DNA from: Azolla caroliniana
Taxonomy: Eukaryota > Plantae > Polypodiophyta
Direction: 5' to 3'
Assembly: GCA_043228905.1 (NCBI GenBank)
Contig: JBHGNT010000995.1
Location: 1-13,113, forward strand
Length of the DNA stretch: 13,113 nucleotides
Shown: positions 1 through 13,113 of the stretch, in pieces
Layout of the letters: every line of letters starts with the position of its first letter
How positions within the stretch are numbered: the first letter of the stretch is position 1
Program-made: the position numbers and the translations under genes
The notes under the pieces: generated by a model
Told to the model about the DNA's origin: nothing
Seen by the model: the letters and a program-made list of their open reading frames with translations, nothing else
Database searches by the model: none

Positions 1-48
1 ATGCTTATTATATACCTTAGATTCTAATTTTTTCTTTACTTTCATCAG

Positions 49-2145
49 TTGCGTAGTCCAAGGGAAGTGACCAAGGAGGAATACCATGCATTTTACAAGA
101 AGACTTACAATGAGCATCTTGAGCCCATGGCTTACACACACTTCAATACAGAAGTACATATCTTAACCTTATATAGTGTCGATGAACTCCATGCTGGTGT
201 ACCAGAAAAATTCTAAAAGATAAGCATTAGTTAAAGTTGCCCATGCAAATGTGTCTCTTGTAGGGTGAGGTGGAGTTCAAAAGTTTAATTTATGTACCAG
301 GCATGGCTCCTTTTGCATCAGAAGAAGCAGGAAAGATGAAAAACATCAAACTTTATGTGAAAAGAGTTTTCATTTCAGATGATTTCAATGGTGAGCTGGT
401 AAGTAGTTTTGAAATGTACCAGCAATAAATAAAAACTCAAAAGAGGGCATGCTGATTGAGTATTGTAATTGTGTGCAGTTTCCACTCTACCTTAGCTTCA
501 TGAAGGGTGTTGTGGATTCCAATGATCTTCCGCTCAATGTATCACGAGAGCTCCTCCAAGAGAGCCGCATTGTATGTGACTGATTGGTCAATAGATTTTC
601 AATGTCTGGTTCTGTCTTTATGGAATTTGTCTCATGATTTTTTCATTTATGACATAGGTGAGGCTAATGAAAAAGAGGCTCGGCAAGAAATGCCTTGATT
701 TATTTGAATCTATTGCGAACCGAGAGAATTCAGAGGTAGTCTATTATAAGCCTATGAATTCTATTTTATTTTTTGCTGTGAATCATTAAAACGGGTGACT
801 CCTCCTTGACTTCAGGATTACAAGAAGTTCTATAGAAACTTCGGAAAGTATCTTAAGTTTGGTATCTCCCAAGAAGAGGGTCCCAATCAAAAACGTCTTG
901 CCAACTTACTCCGCTTCTATTCATCAAAACACCAAGAAGAGATGATAAGCTTGAGAGAATATGTGGCAAATATGAAACCAGGCCAGAAAGCGATTTATTA
1001 TTTCTCATCGGAGTCGGTTAAGAGTGCAAGAAATGCACCATTCCTAGAGCAACTGTACAATAAGGATCTTGAAGTTCTATTCATGACTGAAACCTTGGAC
1101 GAGGTGACTGCCCAACATCTCAAGTACTATGAAGGAAAGAAGTTCGTTGACGTGAGCAAGGAAACCTTTAATTTAGGTAACCTAGATCAACCTGTAAAGT
1201 GTTTCCTGTCCTACATTCCTACACATTGAATGCAAACTATTGTTGTATGTCAGGTGATGATGAAAAGCAAAAGCAATTAGCAACTGAATTCAGTTTACTT
1301 TGCAATTGGATGAAGAAAAAAATGGGAGACAAAATCTCCAAGGTGCAAGTATCAAAACGGCTGAGCTCGTCTCCATGTGTCCTTGTATCTGGCAAGGATG
1401 GTTGGTCTGCTAACATGGAAAGGTGCTTGCATTTAAACTTACTTTAGGCCTCTAGCACAGAAATCTAATGGAGGCATAAGATCACTAATCTAACTGGGCA
1501 TGTCAATGCAGGATTATGAGGGCTCAGAGTCTTGGAGATACACCAGGATTAAAAGAATTTATGTACTCTACTAGAGTGCTAGAAATCAATCCAAATCATC
1601 CAGTCATTTTAGACCTCGATGTGCGCATTAAATAATTTATTTTGCACTTAGTTTGCTTCAAATGTATATATATATATTAGGAACATTTTCTTGATGTTCA
1701 TAATAGAATCTTAAGCTGTAGAGGAATTGTTCTTCCAGGATGCACGGAAAACTGGCCGACCTGGAAGCAAGGAAACAATTGAACTCCTATATGAGACAGC
1801 TCTGATGTCTAGCGGTTTTGTTGTAAGTTTTTCATTACATCTCTGTTTGTAAACTATGGAGAGTAGAATAGGATACAATAAGAGAAAACGTATAATATAT
1901 ACACTAAAATATAAATACATATAGAATATGACTGCATGTATATATGATGTGTATGAGGTATATGCTGTTCACATGTATATAGAGAGGTCTGATGTGTGTT
2001 TCAGCCTGAAGATCCCGCTACCTTTGGGTCAAAAATATATAACCTGGTTGCCTCGACATTGGCTCGTGAACGGACAGCAACATTGCCAACACAAACTGAA
2101 GCTGAAATTTTGGAACATGTGAAACCTCAGAGTGCCACTGCATAA
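49..2145 (+). CDS. HSP90: Organellar-type heat shock protein 90 (plastid/mitochondrial HSP90-5/HSP90-6 clade); 5'-partial, middle and C-terminal domains, 424 aa visible
   Basis: Manually spliced with GT-AG sites and consistent phases. Exons: 49-153, 264-398, 479-571, 658-735, 816-1176, 1254-1422, 1512-1620, 1739-1822, 2005-2145 (TAA 2143-2145). Translation contains HSP90 motifs [50 protein letters not shown] (catalytic Arg loop), [30 protein letters not shown] and [29 protein letters not shown] and [11 protein letters not shown] are characteristic of plant organellar HSP90s. N-terminal ATPase exons lie upstream of the window. Confidence 0.95.
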
Positions 2146-3275
2146 GTCATCAAAGTATTATATCTTCTTTGGTGTGATGTTCGCATATCTCCACTACCTA
2201 TCTATTTTACTCCTAAGTGTCCTCTTGCAGCTTTTTAAGTAGTTATCCTTTCTAGTTATTGGCTTTGGAGGCTGGCTATTGCTAGTCTAGTCTTGCCTTT
2301 CTCTTGGAATGCGGTAATATGAAATTTGATAGAGACTCTTCTAGGTGTTGGCAGAATTGTTAACTTCTATAAGGTGTGTACAAATGACTATTTAATTGCG
2401 AATTATACAAGTTTTTCTCCAAATAGGTTAAGTTTTTGGTTATTAATGTATCTGAAACCAAATTTCTAGTGCATCCTGATCGTATTTTGTATTTCGTAAG
2501 TATGTGTTCGGTAGTAGATGCGTTTCTCCTGATATTTTTACTCACTGCTTAACAGTCTTCAGAAAATACAATTGGTACTTATAAAACAAATGGCCCATTT
2601 GTCAAAATATGTAAAAGAATTTTGAGAGTATAAAATGTTAAAACTTTCATCACTTTCCATTTTAGATTTTCTCAAATTTATAACTTCTCTTTTTAACTCC
2701 ACATCTATACTTCTGAGGAACTGCATGTGCTGTTGTAAAATATGATGAGATGGAATATGGGAAAATGTGTTTCATATTGTAAATTGGAATATGCGGGTAT
2801 TTGAATCTCTGAGTATATATATATATGGTTTATTGAAACCTGCTTTGATACATAGAAATGAAGTGCTGCTATATATATAATTTCTTGTTTGAAGATTCGT
2901 TTCCAAAACTACCTGGCTGCAGTTCTAGCTGCAGTTCTATAGTCTGCATAGTTAAATGTGTTGTTGGCATCTACATCTATGCAATGATTATTTTTGCAAC
3001 TAATACCCTGATCCGAGAATTCTAGTGATGATTTGTGGGTGACAAAAATGGAATTATGTCAGCGTATTCATTTTGTGAAAAAAGCAATATCAAATCATTT
3101 CGAAACAAATAGGTTGGCGAACATACAAATTTAACTCTTGTTATAACCGTTTTGTGACAGATTTGTCCACTGCATGTTCTGATTGTGAAATTCCTTTATG
3201 CGCTATTAGTTTATGATATGTAGTGGTGTTTGCATCAGAGTTATCCCATTATGTTAAGAGATTTATTTCAAACAA

Positions 3276-3450
3276 ATTTGGGTGGTTTTAATACAAGTAT
3301 TAGTGTAAAACGGATTGATATTTGAACATGCGGATTTGATAGTAGTCATTATTAATGGGAGCAATATATATGCCCACAGAATATGATTTTAGTGGTTTTG
3401 AAGTTCCAATGTTAAACTGATTGATTTGAACATGCAAATTTGACAATTGT
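3276..3450. repeat. Old ~110-bp tandem duplication
   Basis: GTGGTTTT...TGTAAAACGGATTGATATTTGAACATGCGGATTTGATA (to ~3341) versus GTGGTTTT...TGTTAAACTGATTGATTTGAACATGCAAATTTGACA (to ~3445). Confidence 0.6.
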
Positions 3451-3705
3451 GTGAGCAAGATTGACGTCACAATGATTGTAGAATCCCACGACTCAGAAGA
3501 GCAGTTTGTAGAATCCTCAAATCTTGTCATTTATTGTGCAATGACCTAACACATCAAATCTCTCAATAAGTTTTGGAACGTACATAGTGCTTGTTGTATC
3601 CTGAGGTCCATTATGTAGTTCATCCAAGTGTGTTTGTAAGCATTTTATAAGTGCTATAAGAACAATATCATATGCATATAAAATCCTCACAAACTAAACA
3701 CCTCT

Positions 3706-4015
3706 ATCCCTGTCTCAACTTACTCAAAAATCTTGTAAACTAGAGGCCAAAGTGTCAATAGGAGATTGTGATGGCATGAATATCTATGCACTTTCTTTGT
3801 AAAAGAGTGCTTCAAAAGCAACGAGGCATATCTCAATCAAACTTTCAAGTTTTATGAGTTTGGGGCAAGAGAGAAAATTACCTTTTGTTGCACTTGAATA
3901 AAACTCCTAAATTAGGACCAAGAACCCAACCAACCTAACCACTTCTTGTTTGTAAACCAAGCGAAATGGTATGCAATGCCTAGCTATCTTATGGGATGTG
4001 TAGAAAGTCCATAAT
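3706..4015 (+). mobile_element. Possible heavily decayed LINE (L1-type) ORF2 C-terminal fragment
   Basis: 3986-4015 reads ILWDV*KVHN, resembling the LINE W.(I/V)W..RN motif if TGG>TAG and CGT>CAT. About 60 codons upstream, in another frame, HEYLCTFFVKEC loosely resembles the end of zf-RVT. Confidence 0.25.
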
Positions 4016-4265
4016 GTCACGTGTAGTATTTAGCTTCAATATTACTAGATGGCTCTATTGTGTTTGTGAGGATGTTACAAAGAATTTTATTAGAACTCTT
4101 TGCATTAAGACCGTCTTAGTAGCGTGAATGTAGACACATCAATATGTATCCCAATGATGAAAGTCGAGTATCCCAATTTGGTGACCTTACAATGGCTGCT
4201 TTCGTGAAGCACTCTTGGATTAATTCAAAAGACTTTGTTTAGTTCTCTGTCCACTAACTCTTTGA

Positions 4266-4308
4266 AAGGATTTCTCAAGGATTTCTCAAGGATTTCTCAA
4301 GGATTTCT
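4266..4308. repeat. Perfect 11-bp tandem repeat (AAGGATTTCTC) x3.9
   Basis: Units at 4266, 4277, 4288 and 4299 (last one truncated by 1 nt). Confidence 0.95.
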
Positions 4309-4775
4309 AAATGGGTGCATCACGCTGCACAATGAAACTATATCTAAGTTTGGAATTTGTTTTTCTTGGGGCGTTGGCAACACCTTGTGATCCAAAAGCT
4401 TGTTTCTACTTGGAGATCTTACAAGTTGGTGGAATGTTTATTGTGTAAGACTTTCTCTTGCATATTGATATAAGGGTGGGGTGGCCACACTTTTTAATGA
4501 TGTTACATTGGCATATATGTATATTTTGGATCCTTACCTATTTGATCTTGGTGCACACAAAGTTGCAAGTGTTTTGTTGTTAGGATGTTGTTAGTTTCCT
4601 AGGTACTTGAAAAAGTACAAAACATAGTTTTAAAAGTAAAATGTCCCATTCTTTGAAGTAGGAAATTTTTAATAGATGTGTATCTTTTACTGTTTTTATC
4701 TTATTATGTTTAACCTTATCATGATGTCACTAATGGTTATATGTGAAAAGCTTATAAAAGGTTGATGTTTTGAAA

Positions 4776-4797
4776 CCCCCCCCCTCTCTCTCTCTCT
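4776..4797. repeat. C9 run plus (CT)n microsatellite
   Basis: CCCCCCCCCTCTCTCTCTCTCT read directly. Confidence 0.85.
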
Positions 4798-5280
4798 TTC
4801 ATAATTACCTCGTGACACTACTAGCACTACATCTTGGGGGGTTTGAAACCTAAATTTCTCACCTTGTTATTACTCTGTTGATATCTCTTAAACTCATCAC
4901 CTCATGGTCTCCATTGGGCAACCTTACCAATTGTGCTACATCCATTTCGGCTCAAAAATGATGGTGGGGCAAATTCTTCAAAATGAGTTCCCATATACTT
5001 AGATGGACACCATGATAGATATTGTTACAACCCGACAATTGTATGAAAGATAGTGAGGTTTTTTTGCTCACCAACCTTACGACAATTATATATTAGATAT
5101 TACCTCATTGTTACCTCTTATATCATGAATGTTGTCTTCTCACATTAAGATAATAATGACTTACCAAAAACAATCATGCCCAACCTCATATATGCCTCCA
5201 TATTGTCAATGTTGCCATCGAGTTGCACTTGTCATTGGGCCATTGTGTCCATAAGGATACTTCTATAAAAGGGCTATATA

Positions 5281-5633
5281 ATTGTTGTTACGCCACCATT
5301 GACACCACCATTGTCATTGGCACAATGCCATCAATGAGACATACTCACCAATGAAGACACCCTTAATGACATAACTGATTGAGGAAAGGGCAAAGAAAAA
5401 GTGGATTGATCAAGAGGGTGAAGAGTGAAGAGAATAGATGTTCATGAAACATCACAAAATAAAAACATGCGGCAACAATGGCAAATCATTGAGACAAGCT
5501 AAGAGTCTAGTGATGGTCAATATTTGATTGCTAATTGGAGTCCAAACTCAATTTGTGGAAAATATATCTAGGATGAGCATGAAGAGGACAATCAAAATGA
5601 GGATGAACAGTTACAAGTGAGTAAAGAGTGATA
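5281..5633 (+). pseudogene. Decayed coding remnant, probably TE-derived (GKGKEKV motif, acidic tract)
   Basis: One frame reads ...ILTNEDTLNDITD*GKGKEKVD*SRG*RVKR...YI*DEHEEDNQNEDEQLQV. The interspersed stops are compatible with C-to-T decay of CGA/CAA/CAG. Confidence 0.35.
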
Positions 5634-6215
5634 AAAGATCAATGGATGTAAAAAATTATGGATATACATAAAGGTACAACTAACATTTGTCTCTTGACTA
5701 AATGGACGATGCACTAGATGGTTTGCCAAGGCAGCCACATGAACATGCTAGTTATCACCAATTTGATTGAATTTCTCAAAAGAGTTGGAGAGCTGCCCAT
5801 GCCTTCTTCCCCTCCAACATTCCTTTCTTCCAACTTGAGTTGAATTTATTGGGATACCTTGGATGAACATCTTGCCCTTGACTTACATGTTAATTTCGCT
5901 CGTCATTCCCTCTCTATAAGGGAATTAAAGTTTAACTAAATCAACAAACTTACACTCGCAGAGCATATGTATGATTGACAACACTTCAACAAGACAAATA
6001 CTAAAGCAATCACTTTAATTACGATAGAGATGAGATACAACATTCAATTTAACATTCATCGGTATATAATGGCGATTACACTCTTGTTAAAAATATGTAA
6101 CTTGGGGTTATAGCCAAGGGCAACATGGAATCGTTATTTAACCCTCAAAAACTAAATTTTGGTCCCTTGCTAAATATCATGTGTTGGGTTTTACATTTAT
6201 ACTACTTGTAAGGTG

Positions 6216-6556
6216 TGTTGACTACCGAATGTTATGTGCCCATCACCATATGACTAAAAAGAATCTCGCTCTTTTGCTATGTTCCTCTTCCAAACTATTC
6301 AAAGCAACGTGACCGGGCTCCGGTCGACGGCTCACCAATCATCAGGTCACCAACTCCCTTAACATTGTGGCACTGAGCAAACATCAACTATAGGGTCCAC
6401 ATTCCTATTTATAGAATGTGTCCTTCCAAAAAACTATTTTCAGACCCTTCACCAGATGATGTGCAAGAGTGAAACCTCACTCTTGTATTCTCCAAAGTCT
6501 TGTAACTTAGCGTGTTGCCAATCCAAGCTCTATGTCACAACATTCCCTTATCTCCC
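6216..6556 (-). mobile_element. Probable LTR-retrotransposon 3' LTR remnant with polypurine tract
   Basis: On -, purine-rich GGGAGATAAGGGAA (6556-6543) abuts TGTTG (6542-6538). A TATA-like CTATAAATAGG lies at 6414-6404. A closing CAACA lies at 6220-6216 (alternative 6186-6182). No TSD or second LTR is visible. Confidence 0.4.
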
Positions 6557-6672
6557 ATGTTCATAATTCAATCTTATTCAGCACCTAGTCTTTTATTATT
6601 CTCTACTTTAGAACACTTTCCAAAACTCATAATTGCTTATTTTAGGTTTAGGCTTAGATAAGCTACATTGGA

Positions 6673-7263
6673 TGTGGGCATTAAACAATAATGATTAATT
6701 GAAAGGAAGAGAAAGAAACCATACAAAATACAACCATACCAAAGACAAATTAACATGCAAAGATTAAAAATGAACCAAACATTGCTCCATAAAGGATGGA
6801 GCCTTGGAATTCATGTTTATGTATGAAATAGTTATCATCAATGTTTTTGGGATTAAACAATAATGACTAATTGAAAGGAAGAGAAAGAAACGATAAAAAT
6901 ACCACCAAAAAATACAACCATAAGACAAATTAAAATGCAAAGAATAAAAATGAACCAAACATTATAAAGGATGGGGCTTTGGAATTCATGTTTAAGTGCA
7001 AAATAGTTATAGTCAATGAAAATGAACCAAACATGACCATGTTAACAGATGGAGCCGTGGAATTCATGTTTATGTATGAAATAGTTATAGTCAATGTTGT
7101 GGGTATTAAACAATAATTACTAATTGAAAGGAAGAGAATGCAACCATAAAAACACAATACAACCATACCAAATACGAATTAAAATGCAAAGAACGAAAAT
7201 GAACCCAAAAAAACACTTTAAACAATGGAGCCTTGGATTTCATGTTATGTATTTTAGTCAAAG
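6673..7263. repeat. Degenerate tandem repeat, ~172-175 bp monomer (A-B-A-B-B-A-B organisation)
   Basis: Sub-unit A, ATTAAACAATAAT...TAATTGAAAGGAAGAGAA, occurs at 6680, 6852 and 7105. Sub-unit B, AAAATGAACC...ATGG(A/G)GC..TGGA(A/T)TTCATGTT, occurs four times, with GAATTC at 6807, 6982 and 7060. Confidence 0.9.
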
Positions 7264-7909
7264 TTGTTTTTCTGTAATTTAATGATGAAACAAGTTTCAA
7301 TAAACTTATGATGAGTACGTATGATTTATTTTCGAAAGGAACAAGAGTATGAATTGAACTACAATTCTACAATGTCAGATAACTATTAAGCATGTTATCA
7401 CTTGAGTATTTCACATGAAGTAGTCAATTGTGTGAACACACCAAGGTCTAGTGCTTTTACTTATATAAGGAGGCTTAAGTTATGTTAAGACTATCAGTGT
7501 ACAGTGTATAGTGTACCATGTCACTATGGCTCTTGCTAGCTAAGCATGTACCATCCTTGCAAAACCCAATGTACGACCAACATCAACACTCAATGGTATG
7601 GGACATCAAAAGATCCAAATGTCTCGCACTGTTACTAATGGGTGGTTAGGTGATTTGTCACCAACTCTCTCTTCTTTGCTCTATAATTCCTTATATTTTC
7701 CTTAAATAGTTAGTTAAGAGACTAAGACTAACACATGTGAAAACATTTAGATACACACAATAAAGACACCATAGCACACTCAAAAACCTTAAAAAATATG
7801 TGGACCATAACCGACACATTATTTACAAACTAGTTACATTCCCTCTTCATATAAAGAACAAAATCATATCCTCTAGATATTATGTTCTTTAATAGGTCAC
7901 TTGTAAAGA

Positions 7910-10900
7910 TTAAATGAGCTGCCTGAGCACATACTGGAGTATTCCACCATGGTCAAAGTATGTTAACTCCACCTGTTCAAATGCAAGAAAATATTTCAGA
8001 AAATTGTTCAATACCAAAAATCTAATCGATTTTCGTTTGACACCATGAAGGTACGACTAAATCATAAGTCAATACTTCAATCAATTTTCTATACCAAAAC
8101 TTCACATATATTTGAGCCAATTTTGAGTAGCAAAGACGAGACCGAATCACTAAATAATGCTCTTTTGAGTTCATACCAAAAGCAACATCCAAAACAAGAA
8201 ATTAATTATTCAATATCAAGCACACCGAGAGATATCACCAATTCATATAAAAAAGCATTGAACCAAAACCAGAAGTCAATATTTCAGCACTCATTTTCAC
8301 TAACAAAAGGCAAGAACAAATCATTGAATATATCAAGCAAGAACAAATCATTAAATATCTCAAGCAAGAACACATCATTGAATATATCGAGTTAGGTTCC
8401 CAAAATTTACCTGTGTGTCAAATCGAAGGGTGCATGTAAAACTCTTTCCATTGTCGGTAACCACTTCGATATCCTGTCCAGGAGTAATTAACTTGATATC
8501 TGAGGGAAGATCTATTGTGTATCTCTCATAGCCTGTCAGGCCAAGGGATTCAGCATCCTGACCAGGTTTGAAACATAGGGGAATAATTCCCATTCCCACC
8601 AAGTTACTGCGATGTATACGCTCAAAACTCTTTGCAATCACAGCTTTAACTCCCTACCCCATATGTGCACACCAATTAGAAGATCGAAAAATTAAATAAA
8701 TATGCATGCATATTTAGTTTCATTACTACATGTCTCCTATTTACATCAAATATATATAATATACATATATACCTGAAGGTAAGGACCCTTTGCAGCCCAA
8801 TCCCTTGAGCTTCCACTACCATATTCTGCTCCTGCTAATATGATGGTATCAGCACCTTCAGCTTTGTATTTCTGGAAATAGAAGACAACTTTGTTAGCAG
8901 AGGCTTTCAAAAGTAGAGGAAAAAGAAGTCAATGGAAAATTTATGGCCTATACATCTCCCTTTACTTTTATTTGAGGTTGACAAAGATGTTTTGGGCAAA
9001 TAACAAAAACTAAGGGCATTTAGGAAAATAGAAGACGATTTATGAGATTTTCCCCATAATTATGACAATGCAAGGCCTAGAATAAGAATATAATGATGAT
9101 GATTTTCTATTCAACTTTCTCAAGCTGTTTTTCTTTACCATTGCACATCATAGACATATAGCTTCCCTCCAGACAGTACATGAATAGTATTGGGACCTAC
9201 TTCATTAGGGTGAAGTAGGTCCCAAGACTATTCATGTGTTGTACGGAGATTTTTCCTCATCGTAATGACAATGCAAGGCTTAGAATAAGAATATAACGAT
9301 GATGATTTTCTATTCAACTTTCTCAAGATGTTTTTTTTACCATTGCAGCAACGTAGACAGATATAACTTCTCACCGAACGGCACATGAATAGTTTCGGGA
9401 CCTACTTCACCCTAATGAAGTAGGTCCCAATACTATCATGTGCCATCCGGAGATATTTCCCCATAGTAATTGCAATGCAAGGCCTTGAATAAGAATATAA
9501 CGATGATAAATTTTCTATTCAACTTTCTCAAGCTGTTTTTTTTACCATTGCAGCATCGTAGACATATAGCTTCTCTCCGGACGGCACATGAATAGTCTTG
9601 GGACCTACTTCACCCTTCAAAAACCTATTGACAATGCGGATATTAGCAAATGTTCCTCGTGCCATTATCTCATCATTACCACGTCGGCTCCCATAGGAAT
9701 TAAAATCTCTTCGGTCTACTCCATGCTCAATTAAGTACTTTGCAGCAGGGCTGTCTTTGTGGATGTTACCAGCTGGAGATATATGATCAGTTGTGATACT
9801 ATCACCAAAGTTGAGCAAACAGTAAGCATCCTTCACTCCATGTGCTCCTGGAGGTTGAAGAGACATGGATTTGAAGAACGGTGGATCGTGAACGTATGTA
9901 GACTTCTCATCCCATAAATACAGAGCACCAGTAGGGGATGATAACTCATTCCACATAGGATTTCCGTTAGAGATAGATTCATAGGTAGATTTGAACATTT
10001 CGGGCAAGACAGATGATTCCATTACCTACAACATCCAATAAGTTTATATCACACACTACTATTTGCCCTTCAGTCTTTAAAGGAAAAATTTGTAAACCAG
10101 TTAAAACAAAGTATCTTACCTCAGTAATTTCCTCACTTGAAGGCCAGATATCGCTAAGGAAAACCTTTCGTCCATCTTCACCAGTACCAATAGGCTCCTT
10201 CTCAAAGTCAATATCAACCTAGTGTAGTGTCAAAAAAAATAGAACATTAAAATTGTAATAAGAATATTCTGAGAGTAGCAGTAGGTGCAGAAAAAGCATA
10301 CGTTATTTCATTCATACTCACAGTTCCTGCCAGAGCATATGCCACCACCAGAGGTGGAGACGCTAAGTAATTCGCCCGAGTTAATGGGTGCACCCTGCCC
10401 TCAAAATTACGATTTCCAGAAAGGACAGCCGCAGCAACGATATCTACACACATGTTCAGTTGTCATAAATATGCATAGAGAAATGGGTCATATAAATTTT
10501 ACTGAGATTTTTTCCTAAACCATTTTTGAATAAAGGGGCAGCATAAATTCTGCTGAGAAAAGAAAGTATAAAAAGTTACCGAGGAAAAATAAAAGCAGCA
10601 AAGTCAGGCTCCTCCTATGAAGGAGAACTATTTTTACCTTTATCGATTATGGCTTCCGCCACGGCCTCATGTATCTCTCCAGAATTTCCTATGCATGTAG
10701 TGCAGCCATAACCAACTAAACTGAAGCCTTGCAAATTTAAGAAATGGTCTAGCCCACTGTGAAAACAAGAAGCAGCTTATGTGAAATGAATAATGATGGT
10801 AATTTAGGAAATCTCTTAATTCCAGAAATCATAGAAACATTGGACAAAAGACCTCTTGTTCAAATATTTTGTTACGACTCCAGATCCAGGAGCTAGACTT

Positions 10901-12605
10901 GTCTTGATCCATGGTTTCACCTGCAATTTAATTATGAACAAATGAGTATGAATTTTCAAATTTCATTATATAAACAATACATAAAACGCAAAATGAGAAG
11001 AATGATTAATACCTTTAGACCCAATTCAAATGCTTTCTTTGCAACAAGTCCAGCTCCCAGCATGACACTGGGATTGGAAGTATTTGTACAGCTAGTGATA
11101 GCAGCTATCACAACATCTCCATGTCTTAATTCCTCAGGCTTCCCATCAAAAGAAAATCCTGCTACCAAGCCTTGTTTGTCCTTAGGAATGGCAAAACCCT
11201 GCAAAAATAAACATGAATGTATGAATCAATAAAATGCCCATAAATGTATTCGCTATAAATAATGAAATTGGAAGAATAAATGAGTATCTACTATCCATTA
11301 ATAAAATGGATAAATGTGTGACTTATATATTACATGAATATTTGGACGCTGAAACTATTATCACATTATAACATTTACCTTAAACCCGACTCTGCTGTCT
11401 AGGCAAGAGTGCCAATCATCCTTCATGTCCTTCAGTGAGACTCGATCATGAGGCCTGTACTAGATTGTTTATACCAATATTTTGGTAAACAAATATGCAA
11501 CTGCCAGGGGTCAATTATAACACATTTATACTTACCGTTTCGGTCCAGAAACGGATGGCTCTACACTCGCAAGATCAAGCTCAATGTATGATGAGTATTT
11601 CTTATCTACTGTAGGCTGTAAAAGTTTCAATGATGATAGCTCAAATGTCCATCACTTTTCTCAGATAAACAGTTGTGAACAGAAGAAACCTAAAAAGAGT
11701 TCTAAGAACAGATCAATAATCACCTCATTGTAATCAACAAATAGTTTGTTGGCACGTAAATAAGCCTCGATCATCTTGATCTATAAACACAATCAATACT
11801 AAGGCTATGAGTGACCAGACACACAAACAGGAAAGAAACTAACATAATTTGTACACTCAAAAACACATATAATATTAGAATTTAGATCATAGAAACGCCC
11901 ATCAGCAAAATTTTCACCTTTTCTTCATCTCTTCCTGTTAACCTCAGGTATTGTAAGGTAACATGGTCAACTGGGAAGAAACCCATTGTAGCTCCATACT
12001 CAGGAGACATATTTGCAATAGTGGCACGATCAGCTAGTGACAATGCAGACATTCCCTCACCTGCATTTTGGTACATGTCTTACATCATCCTTTAGCATTC
12101 TGCATTCTTATCACGCCTTATATCATGCTTTAGCATTACACAAACAGGAAGGATAATTCATTTTTGGTATCCCTAGGAAGGATGTGGTTTAGTTATACCG
12201 TAAAACTCAACGAATTTTCCAACCACGCCATGTTTCCTAAGCATTTGGGTCACTGTAAGCACTAAATCAGTTGCTGTAACCCCTGTCTGCAATTTTCCAT
12301 TCAGCTTAAAACCCACAACACCAGGAAGGACCATACTCATAGGCTGTGCAAGAAAAATGTACATTTAATCATTTTGAATCTACAAATCCAAACCCCAAGA
12401 GTACATTACATGAAAAAACAATAAGCAACCAGTAGAGACTAACTTGACCAAGCATTGTTGCCTCTGCTTCAATACCACCAACTCCCCATCCTGCAACCCC
12501 AAGTCCATCTATCATCGTGGTGTGTGAATCAGTTCCAACAAGACTATCAGGATAAAGAATTCCATCAGTGTTAAACACCACTCTAGCCAGATATTCGAGA
12601 TTCAC
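7910..12605 (-). CDS. ACO: Aconitate hydratase (aconitase, AcnA/IRP1 family); 5'-partial, 713 aa visible
   Basis: Manually spliced on -. Exons: 12605-12444, 12343-12199, 12060-11918, 11780-11724, 11615-11536, 11454-11379, 11198-11013, 10920-10853, 10756-10638, 10443-10322, 10218-10120, 10025-9546, 8871-8773, 8653-8411, 7972-7910 (TAA 7912-7910). All are GT-AG with an open frame. Conserved motifs: [20 protein letters not shown] and [12 protein letters not shown] (three Fe-S Cys), [40 protein letters not shown]-terminal [13 protein letters not shown]. Confidence 0.97.
8310..8390. repeat. 27-bp minisatellite x3 in the last aconitase intron
   Basis: GCAAGAACAAATCATTGAATATATCAA at 8310-8336, 8337-8363 and 8364-8390, with 2 substitutions per copy relative to the first. 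Confidence 0.92.
9167..9248. other. Exon-derived hairpin 1 (38-bp stem, 6-nt loop TTAGGG on +)
   Basis: Arms 9167-9204 and 9211-9248, loop 9205-9210. The inner 27 bp have one mismatch (9189/9226); there are 5 non-Watson-Crick positions in total. Confidence 0.92.
9371..9453. other. Exon-derived hairpin 2 (~38-bp stem, 6-nt loop CCCTAA on +)
   Basis: Arms 9371-9409 and 9416-9453, loop 9410-9415. The inner 13 bp are perfect; there is one bulge and a few mismatches further out. Confidence 0.9.
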
Positions 12606-13113
12606 CTGTTCATTATAATAGTTAGTGATCTTGAATTGTAGGTAAAACATCTGGAAAGGATTTTTACAAGATTTGATTTGAAATCTTGTAAATGGACACC
12701 AAGGGAAAGTTACACAAACACAATTTTGTACATAACTTTGATGAGTTCTGTAAATAATGAAAAGGATTTGTATAACTCGTTGATTTTTCAATACAAGTAT
12801 ATTAATGGTGAATTAGGGTCCGCAAATTTTGTGCAGAGCAGGCTATTACAATTTGTGAAAAAGCCACAATTATCTCACTCAAATTCATTTAGTACTCATG
12901 GTTTGCTGATGACCTATAGGCCAAAACACTTCTTGAACTTATTATCCTAAGTCAAAAAATTAAATCCAAGTGCATATATGAACAATGGGATACAAACATC
13001 ATGCTATTGCAAAGTTTATTAGATTCTTTCAGTTATCATGATTTGCAGTAAAAAACCTTATAAACTCCTGAACTAAGTCACTCCAATTTATCAAGTAATA
13101 ACAGGAATGTCTT

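Follow-up and report, generated by a model that had tools for sequence, protein, structure and literature searches.

Paired hairpins in an aconitase intron of Azolla caroliniana as the probable scar of a young, lineage-specific templated insertion

We analysed a stretch of 13,113 nucleotides (nt) from the fern Azolla caroliniana (contig JBHGNT010000995.1 of assembly GCA_043228905.1, positions 1 to 13,113), hereafter the window, the minus strand of which carries an aconitase gene. The intron downstream of exon 10025-9546 of this gene contains two hairpins, which are the joints of a tandem array and have arms copied from the end of that exon. The hairpins are probably the scar of a young, lineage-specific templated insertion that is now drifting neutrally. 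The original prediction, made from the letters of the window alone, had taken them for a candidate source of small RNAs directed against the host gene. The exon products match the Aconitase_C domain (Pfam PF00694), a GT donor at 9545 directly follows the exon, and an RNA contig of run X8 joins 9546 straight to 8871 and 8772 to 8652. Because 9546 is joined to 8871 in this contig, the intron is 9545-8872 and is spliced from the original donor. The parts of the gene concerned are as follows.

9546 to 10025, minus strand: aconitase exon with Aconitase_C (Pfam PF00694); an RNA contig covers 9546-10027
8872 to 9545, minus strand: array-bearing intron of 674 nt with GT..AG ends, removed as one piece in the mRNA contig
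8772 to 8871, minus strand: next aconitase exon, joined to 9546 in the mRNA contig

The array is a 203-bp tandem repeat in 2.8 copies at 9044-9616 (Tandem Repeats Finder, score 840). The source of every copy is the final 71 nt of the aconitase exon, 9546-9616. Read in the sense of the gene, the order is E0 (the exon end)-I1-A1 / S2-I2-A2 / S3-I3, followed by the remaining intron. S denotes the final 66-73 nt of the exon, copied in sense together with the donor GT, I the first ~91 nt of the intron, and A an antisense copy of 38-43 nt of the exon piece. Each hairpin is one A/S joint.

9044 to 9616, minus strand: tandem array, the unit of which is a sense exon piece, the intron start and an antisense exon piece (Tandem Repeats Finder; repeat families D1 and D2; alignment A1)
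9454 to 9545, minus strand: I1, first copy of the intron start, after the real donor 9546/9545 (sequence alignment)
9371 to 9453, minus strand: hairpin 1, made of A1, the loop TTAGGG and S2, with arms 9371-9409 and 9416-9453, ~39 bp and one bulge
9416 to 9453, minus strand: A1, antisense exon piece, starting with TCTC shared with the intron and followed by a 2-nt filler at 9414-9415
9341 to 9413, minus strand: S2, sense exon end in decay, 2 nt inserted and the frame shifted; duplicate GT donor at 9340-9339
9250 to 9340, minus strand: I2, second copy of the intron start (sequence alignment)
9167 to 9249, minus strand: hairpin 2, made of A2, the loop CCCTAA and S3, with arms 9167-9204 and 9211-9248
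9207 to 9249, minus strand: A2, antisense exon piece, followed by a 2-nt filler at 9205-9206 (sequence alignment)
9139 to 9204, minus strand: S3, sense exon end in decay, 1 nt deleted and none of its three CpGs left; duplicate GT donor at 9138-9137
9048 to 9138, minus strand: I3, third copy of the intron start, continuous with the native remaining intron (alignment)
9192 to 9223, 9397 to 9428 and 9600 to 9612: sites of a 13-nt core, beside the loops, the exon copy being the last

All of the ~404 extra nucleotides map to the adjoining exon end or intron start, except for the 2-nt filler at each apex, and the array has duplicated the 5' splice site twice. S2 carries a 2-nt insertion and S3 a 1-nt deletion, and both are therefore dead as coding sequence. 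The units differ among themselves by 8-15% over two comparisons, one of which gave 8-10% in a nearly star-like pattern, and the copy nearest to the intron of an array-less relative is I3 (6.6% different). An open reading frame of 52 amino acids within unit 2 (9231-9386) had no relative in the protein collection searched.

Much of what the original prediction described was borne out. The two tandem hairpins of ~38 bp that it placed in this intron are both present and have strong predicted folds. Folding, which it had proposed as a check, gave -60.1 kcal/mol for hairpin 1 (z = -10.7 against shuffled sequence) and -51.5 kcal/mol for hairpin 2 (z = -9.6, likewise). The arms of hairpin 2 are 38 nt long and 87% complementary, with five mismatches, a 6-nt loop and no bulge. 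Alignments agree with the statement that the arms copy the codons of the exon end through inverted duplication of the host exon, the arms being 38-43 nt copies of exon 9574-9616 with 93-100% identity. The perfect 32-nt reverse complement reported between 9207-9238 and exon 9585-9616 is exact, and it extends to 43 nt at 93%. The pre-mRNA does, as had been said, hold antisense of its own mRNA in the A1 and A2 copies, one of them perfect over those 32 nt. The 13-nt core occurs five times in the window, compared with 0.29 expected by chance. Because both joints are palindromes, the two hairpin regions could also pair with each other; the predicted structure is a near-perfect foldback of ~85 bp with a 121-nt loop (-142 kcal/mol, z = -12).

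The two hairpins mirror each other at their centres. Their loops are exact reverse complements (TTAGGG and CCCTAA), and a 39-nt stretch across the hairpin 1 loop is identical to the reverse complement of hairpin 2, within an inverted match of 66 nt overall. The arm variants are swapped too: A1 and S3 share AAT...AAT, and S2 and A2 keep AGGG...AAG of the exon. The centre of one palindrome was probably inverted later, by a template switch or by recombination between its arms. The flipped centre also shows that the palindrome has been structurally active in DNA. A link of the TTAGGG and CCCTAA loops to telomeres was considered and rejected; only a single unit is present, and the exon AGGG with the 2-nt filler accounts for it.

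The array is not an assembly artefact. Unitigs of X1 and X2, which come from the same organism in different studies, tile it with ~100% identity at normal depth, and every joint (I1-A1, A1-S2, S2-I2, I2-A2, A2-S3 and S3-I3) lies inside one unitig in X1/X2. An independent contig of the European Nucleotide Archive (ENA), L009, is 99.7% identical over 1115 nt and runs from the exon through I1 and A1 into S2, spanning hairpin 1. Run X3, from a second organism, contains window-like pieces together with a ~5% diverged version extending over both hairpins, hereafter the V allele.

At ~1x, the ENA contigs L001, L002 and L012 are mosaics of three aconitase paralogues (W, Y and Z), and L010 and L011 turn back through the palindromic core of 32-39 nt. 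These mosaic contigs (L001, L002 and L010-L012) were left out of the structural evidence. L002 had been a candidate for an array-less intron on a paralogue exon and was dropped, the ~1x contigs of its sample series being mosaics. Since short-read assemblers are misled by the palindromic core, gene models and low-coverage contigs from this locus should be treated with caution. Paralogue Y has a short intron of ~115 nt at the same position.

Comparison of orthologous introns, another check put forward with the original prediction, showed the array in the V allele and its absence from a close relative represented by the contigs L005-L008. Four ENA samples underlie these four contigs, of which SPAdes assembled L005 and L006, and MEGAHIT L007 (k = 141) and L008 (k = 119). 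They run from the exon via one intron unit into the remaining intron and the next exon, so that their intron has 270 nt as against 674 nt, and the core occurs in them once, in the exon. They belong to the same gene, differing from the window by 1.7% in the exon and 3.2% in the upstream intron. Their intron unit is without the private changes of I1 or I3 and is therefore not like a collapsed array. A derived C at both 9923 and 9762 is common to the window and the V allele (X3/X8), as opposed to the array-less type and the paralogues Y and Z. At 9966 and 9627, where the V allele agrees with the array-less type, the shared base is ancestral according to the outgroups Y and Z. The shared derived bases therefore make the carriers a clade, and the array of ~404 nt was gained on its stem.

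The joints suggest how the insertion was made. TCTC ends each intron piece; its complement GAGA in the exon (...GGAGAGAAG) marks the precise starting point of the antisense copy, giving a microhomology of 4 nt. TCTC is already present in the array-less intron. The ancestral gene would have had a simple intron of ~270 nt after the exon end. About 100 nt into it, a DNA end or a nascent strand that had stalled, with TCTC at its tip, would have turned back to pair with GAGA of the exon, which lies 130-170 nt upstream, and ~40 nt of the exon would have been copied backwards to yield A. The strand would then have been released, gained two bases and copied forward from the exon piece through the intron start to yield S and I. 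The new end is again TCTC, and therefore the same cycle can repeat. Two rounds, which may have been two cycles of one repair event or one event followed by tandem duplication, would give the net addition of ~404 nt in the order A1-S2-I2-A2-S3-I3. We infer this order of events, and likewise the enzymology, which would be either replicative template switching or snap-back synthesis of the polymerase-theta type. Templated insertions are recognised by nearby templates used partly in reverse complement, by microhomology at the switch points and by a sister lineage free of the insertion; all three are found here, the last in low-coverage assemblies.

Since its gain the array appears to have decayed like neutral intron DNA. 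The V allele and the window differ at 15/275 and 10/204 sites of the array, 12/207 sites of the flanking intron and 7/527 sites of the exon. At ~5%, divergence in the array keeps pace with that in the flanking intron, whereas the exon stands at 1.3%. In the V allele, 7 nt are missing at the loop of hairpin 2 as well. Outside the core, the four exon copies carry 17 substitutions in 158 sites (10.8%), ten of which are C>T or G>A, with five at CpG. Mismatches between paired arms can essentially be accounted for by adding up the changes that each arm has undergone independently, and many of these are CpG decay. The changes at the first CpG of hairpin 1 are not compensatory: this pair is a G-U wobble in the window and a C-A mismatch in the V allele. 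One CpG site of hairpin 2 has changed in both arms with pairing kept, which we read as parallel CpG decay. All this is consistent with an insertion that is probably without function.

Two other signs were examined and rejected. The perfect 32-nt match was considered as a sign of selection; at a copy divergence of 5-10%, the chance that a given 32-nt stretch stays perfect is 0.03-0.19, and the match lies within chance. RNA-directed methylation was considered as the source of the C>T excess in the arms; the counts are too low to show it, and G+C and CpG are simply more abundant in the arms than in the intron pieces.

Some observations weigh against the account of a templated insertion in neutral drift. 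The 13-nt core beside both loops is invariant in all four copies and the exon (0/52 substitutions, compared with 17/158 outside it), with a nominal P = 0.003 for a core that was picked after viewing the data and is without CpG. The invariance could reflect homogenisation of the arms or a weak constraint. I1 and I2 share two derived bases, which bears on the order of events. The array-less contigs come from assemblies at ~1-2x, in sample series that include chimeric contigs elsewhere. Splicing was observed in an RNA contig that belongs to the V allele, the array of which is seen only in another run; because the contig (X8) and the array (X3) come from different runs, normal splicing of the carrier allele is what we infer from the two together.

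The original prediction went further than the structure. It proposed that the excised intron could yield RNAs of 21-24 nt that cleave or methylate the host aconitase gene and its close paralogues, as a transcription-coupled negative feedback. In terms of the array, DCL (Dicer-like) enzymes would process the hairpins, and the acting RNAs would be those from the antisense arms A1 and A2. The strong hairpins and the possible ~85-bp foldback would suit such processing, A2 is a perfect antisense of the exon over 32 nt, and the core is invariant. The stem geometry lies within the limits set for plant microRNA (miRNA) duplexes, no more than five mismatched positions with no more than three of them asymmetric (10.1101/213314). 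Introns are a favoured home of template-switch hairpins that become miRNAs (PMC10710096), and intronic miRNAs capable of targeting their hosts are reported from rice (PMC3661559). Nevertheless we regard this idea as unlikely. The close relative is without the array, and the array changes at the rate of the flanking intron. The arms have changed at different sites, save for the one parallel CpG, and one allele has a deletion in a loop. Matches to Rfam score only 18-34 bits against gathering scores of 140-330; no miRNA family in Rfam reaches one quarter of its gathering score, the best being MIR2606 with 33.7 against 139.7 bits, and the matches are those of generic hairpins. The RNA assembly of X8 indicates clean splicing and contains no intron-derived contig. 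In this connection, Christie et al. reportedly found in 2011 that efficient splicing tends to keep transcripts out of silencing pathways. A literature search returned no relevant report of aconitase as an miRNA target.

Compared with a proto-MIRNA born by inverted duplication, the hairpins do have arms that derive from a founder gene and extend beyond the length of a small RNA. However, they are not a separate locus, lying in the intron of the founder gene itself, 90-450 nt from the source exon. It is unlikely that a feedback loop is being maintained. Neutral evolution is also seen in young MIRNA-like loci, so that the hairpins may incidentally give rise to some small RNAs, but the structure can be accounted for with no regulatory role.

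Somewhat less probable still is an action of the array on splicing, in which pairing of the antisense copies with the exon end would leave the real donor in a loop, and a 71-nt poison pseudo-exon would be included. The exon end is able to pair with A1 or A2, and a candidate pseudo-exon lies at 9341-9411. It would take its AG from the hairpin 1 loop (TTAG; 9413-9412) and use the duplicate donor at 9340-9339, the other duplicate donor being at 9138-9137. As its 71 nt are not a multiple of 3, a frame shift is predicted, and a TGA would arise where it meets the next exon. An AG is lacking from the flipped loop of hairpin 2, which also fits such an action. However, the sole RNA contig uses the original donor and skips the whole array, although contigs do drop rare isoforms, and the arguments for neutrality apply here as they do to the small RNAs.

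It is very improbable that a mobile foldback element, or one like a miniature inverted-repeat transposable element (MITE), was inserted in the intron: there are inverted repeats in an intron, and other loci share its part 8940-9028, but the arms copy the adjoining exon, the spacer copies the adjoining intron start, there are no foreign termini and no target-site duplication, and the shared stretch lies outside the array. Sequence foreign to the locus, such as the terminal inverted repeats of a MITE or foldback transposon, was not found, and within the window the core occurs only in the exon and the array. Equally hard to credit is a mis-assembly of the palindromic repeat that made the array or its hairpins; low-coverage assemblies do go astray in the core of 32-39 nt (L010 and L011), but each joint lies within a single unitig in two independent studies at normal depth, hairpin 1 is spanned by L009 and both hairpins are in the diverged X3 allele, and units that are 8-15% apart cannot be expanded or collapsed copies of one sequence.

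Other features of the window were noted beside the array. The stretch 8940-9028 of the intron is common to other loci of the same organisms, which diverge beyond it, and loose ends with raised depth are found at 9011 and 9028 in X1, X2 and X3. This stretch, outside the array, may be a dispersed repeat or the intron of a paralogue. A tandem repeat of 27 bp in 2.9 copies occupies 8310-8388, in the intron just past the aconitase exon 8409-8652; its arrangement or copy number differs in contigs of X1, X2 and X3 (15 extra letters, 8388-8350). In the V allele (X3 DNA and X8 RNA) the coding exon 8409-8652 has an in-frame insertion of 3 nt at 8471. The exons of an HSP90 gene (Pfam PF00183) lie at 1-2150 on the plus strand, and this gene and the aconitase gene converge tail to tail. 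Intergenic repeats are a perfect 11-bp repeat in 3.9 copies at 4266-4308 and a 78-bp repeat in 2.1 copies at 6943-7096.

The locus provides a case with an established direction, in which one replication or repair accident would have set a complete, strong hairpin, partly antisense to the coding sequence of the host, in a transcribed intron. The empty site in a relative, the priming microhomology and the later inversion of the spacer are all readable. It also joins two ideas on the birth of small-RNA genes, namely the inverted duplication of target genes in plants and the template-switch hairpins of primate introns. Carriers and non-carriers provide a natural experiment in which the structure could prove to be silent, to give rise to small RNAs or to interfere with splicing, and a natural control exists because the close relative has the same gene without the insertion. 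If the hairpins did yield small RNAs against aconitase, they would be a newborn self-targeting source, made in one step from the gene's own exon. If they are only a neutral scar, as we judge most likely, the array is an instructive but ordinary structural mutation.

Several known systems resemble the array. In duplication-inverted triplication-duplication (DUP-TRP/INV-DUP) rearrangements, fork stalling and template switching (FoSTeS)/microhomology-mediated break-induced replication (MMBIR) and polymerase-theta snap-back insertions, an inverted triplicated piece stands between duplications, with microhomology and short fillers. The array shares with DUP-TRP/INV-DUP the order a-b-c-a'(inverted)-a-b-c, the microhomology at the switches and the short fillers. 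It differs in scale, with tens to hundreds of bases instead of kilobases to megabases, and in the repetition of the cycle. A single template switch can produce an entire hairpin (Loytynoja and Goldman 2017, PMC5453318; Monttinen and Loytynoja 2022, PMC8794818; Monttinen et al. 2023, PMC10710096). As with those hairpins, nearby sequence was reverse-complemented into a transcribed intron to give a ready stem, and the change is lineage-specific with the ancestral state in a relative. Unlike in those cases, the return jump lands upstream, so that ~165 nt are also duplicated directly, and this happened twice; moreover, the template is the host's own coding exon, the host is a plant rather than a primate, and the case is known from sequence. 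Short inverted repeats are known to have their spacer inverted and their arms made alike by template switching from arm to arm (Abraham and Hazkani-Covo 2021, PMC8604942). The hairpins here agree with this in their reverse-complemented loops, the swapped arm variants on the loop side and the perfect core of the stem. The inverted segment is, in contrast to the 2-5 nt in yeast coding sequence, ~46 nt long, comprises the loop and inner arms, and lies in an intron.

Allen et al. are said to have proposed in 2004 that plant MIRNA genes arise from inverted duplication of target-gene sequence (the MIR161/MIR163 model). An inverted-duplication origin has been described for miR163 (PMC5388894). As with MIR161 and MIR163, the arms here resemble a protein-coding founder gene well beyond 21 nt, and the locus is young and lineage-specific. 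Those genes are separate transcription units with sequenced small RNAs, whereas the hairpins of the array lie in the founder's own intron and have arms of ~40 nt. The miRNA miR838 sits in intron 14 of DCL1. An intron-derived miRNA has been described with correct splicing of its host (PMC6151947). Like miR838 and the intronic miRNAs of rice (PMC3661559), the hairpins would be co-transcribed in the intron of their host and could in principle regulate it. Those miRNAs have sequenced products and are not built from an exon of the host, whereas here the host exon is the source. The array follows the template-switch route to intronic hairpins described in primates and the inverted-duplication route to plant MIRNA genes, but differs from both in that an exon of the same gene served as template, that the copies settled in an intron of this gene and that the cycle ran more than once.

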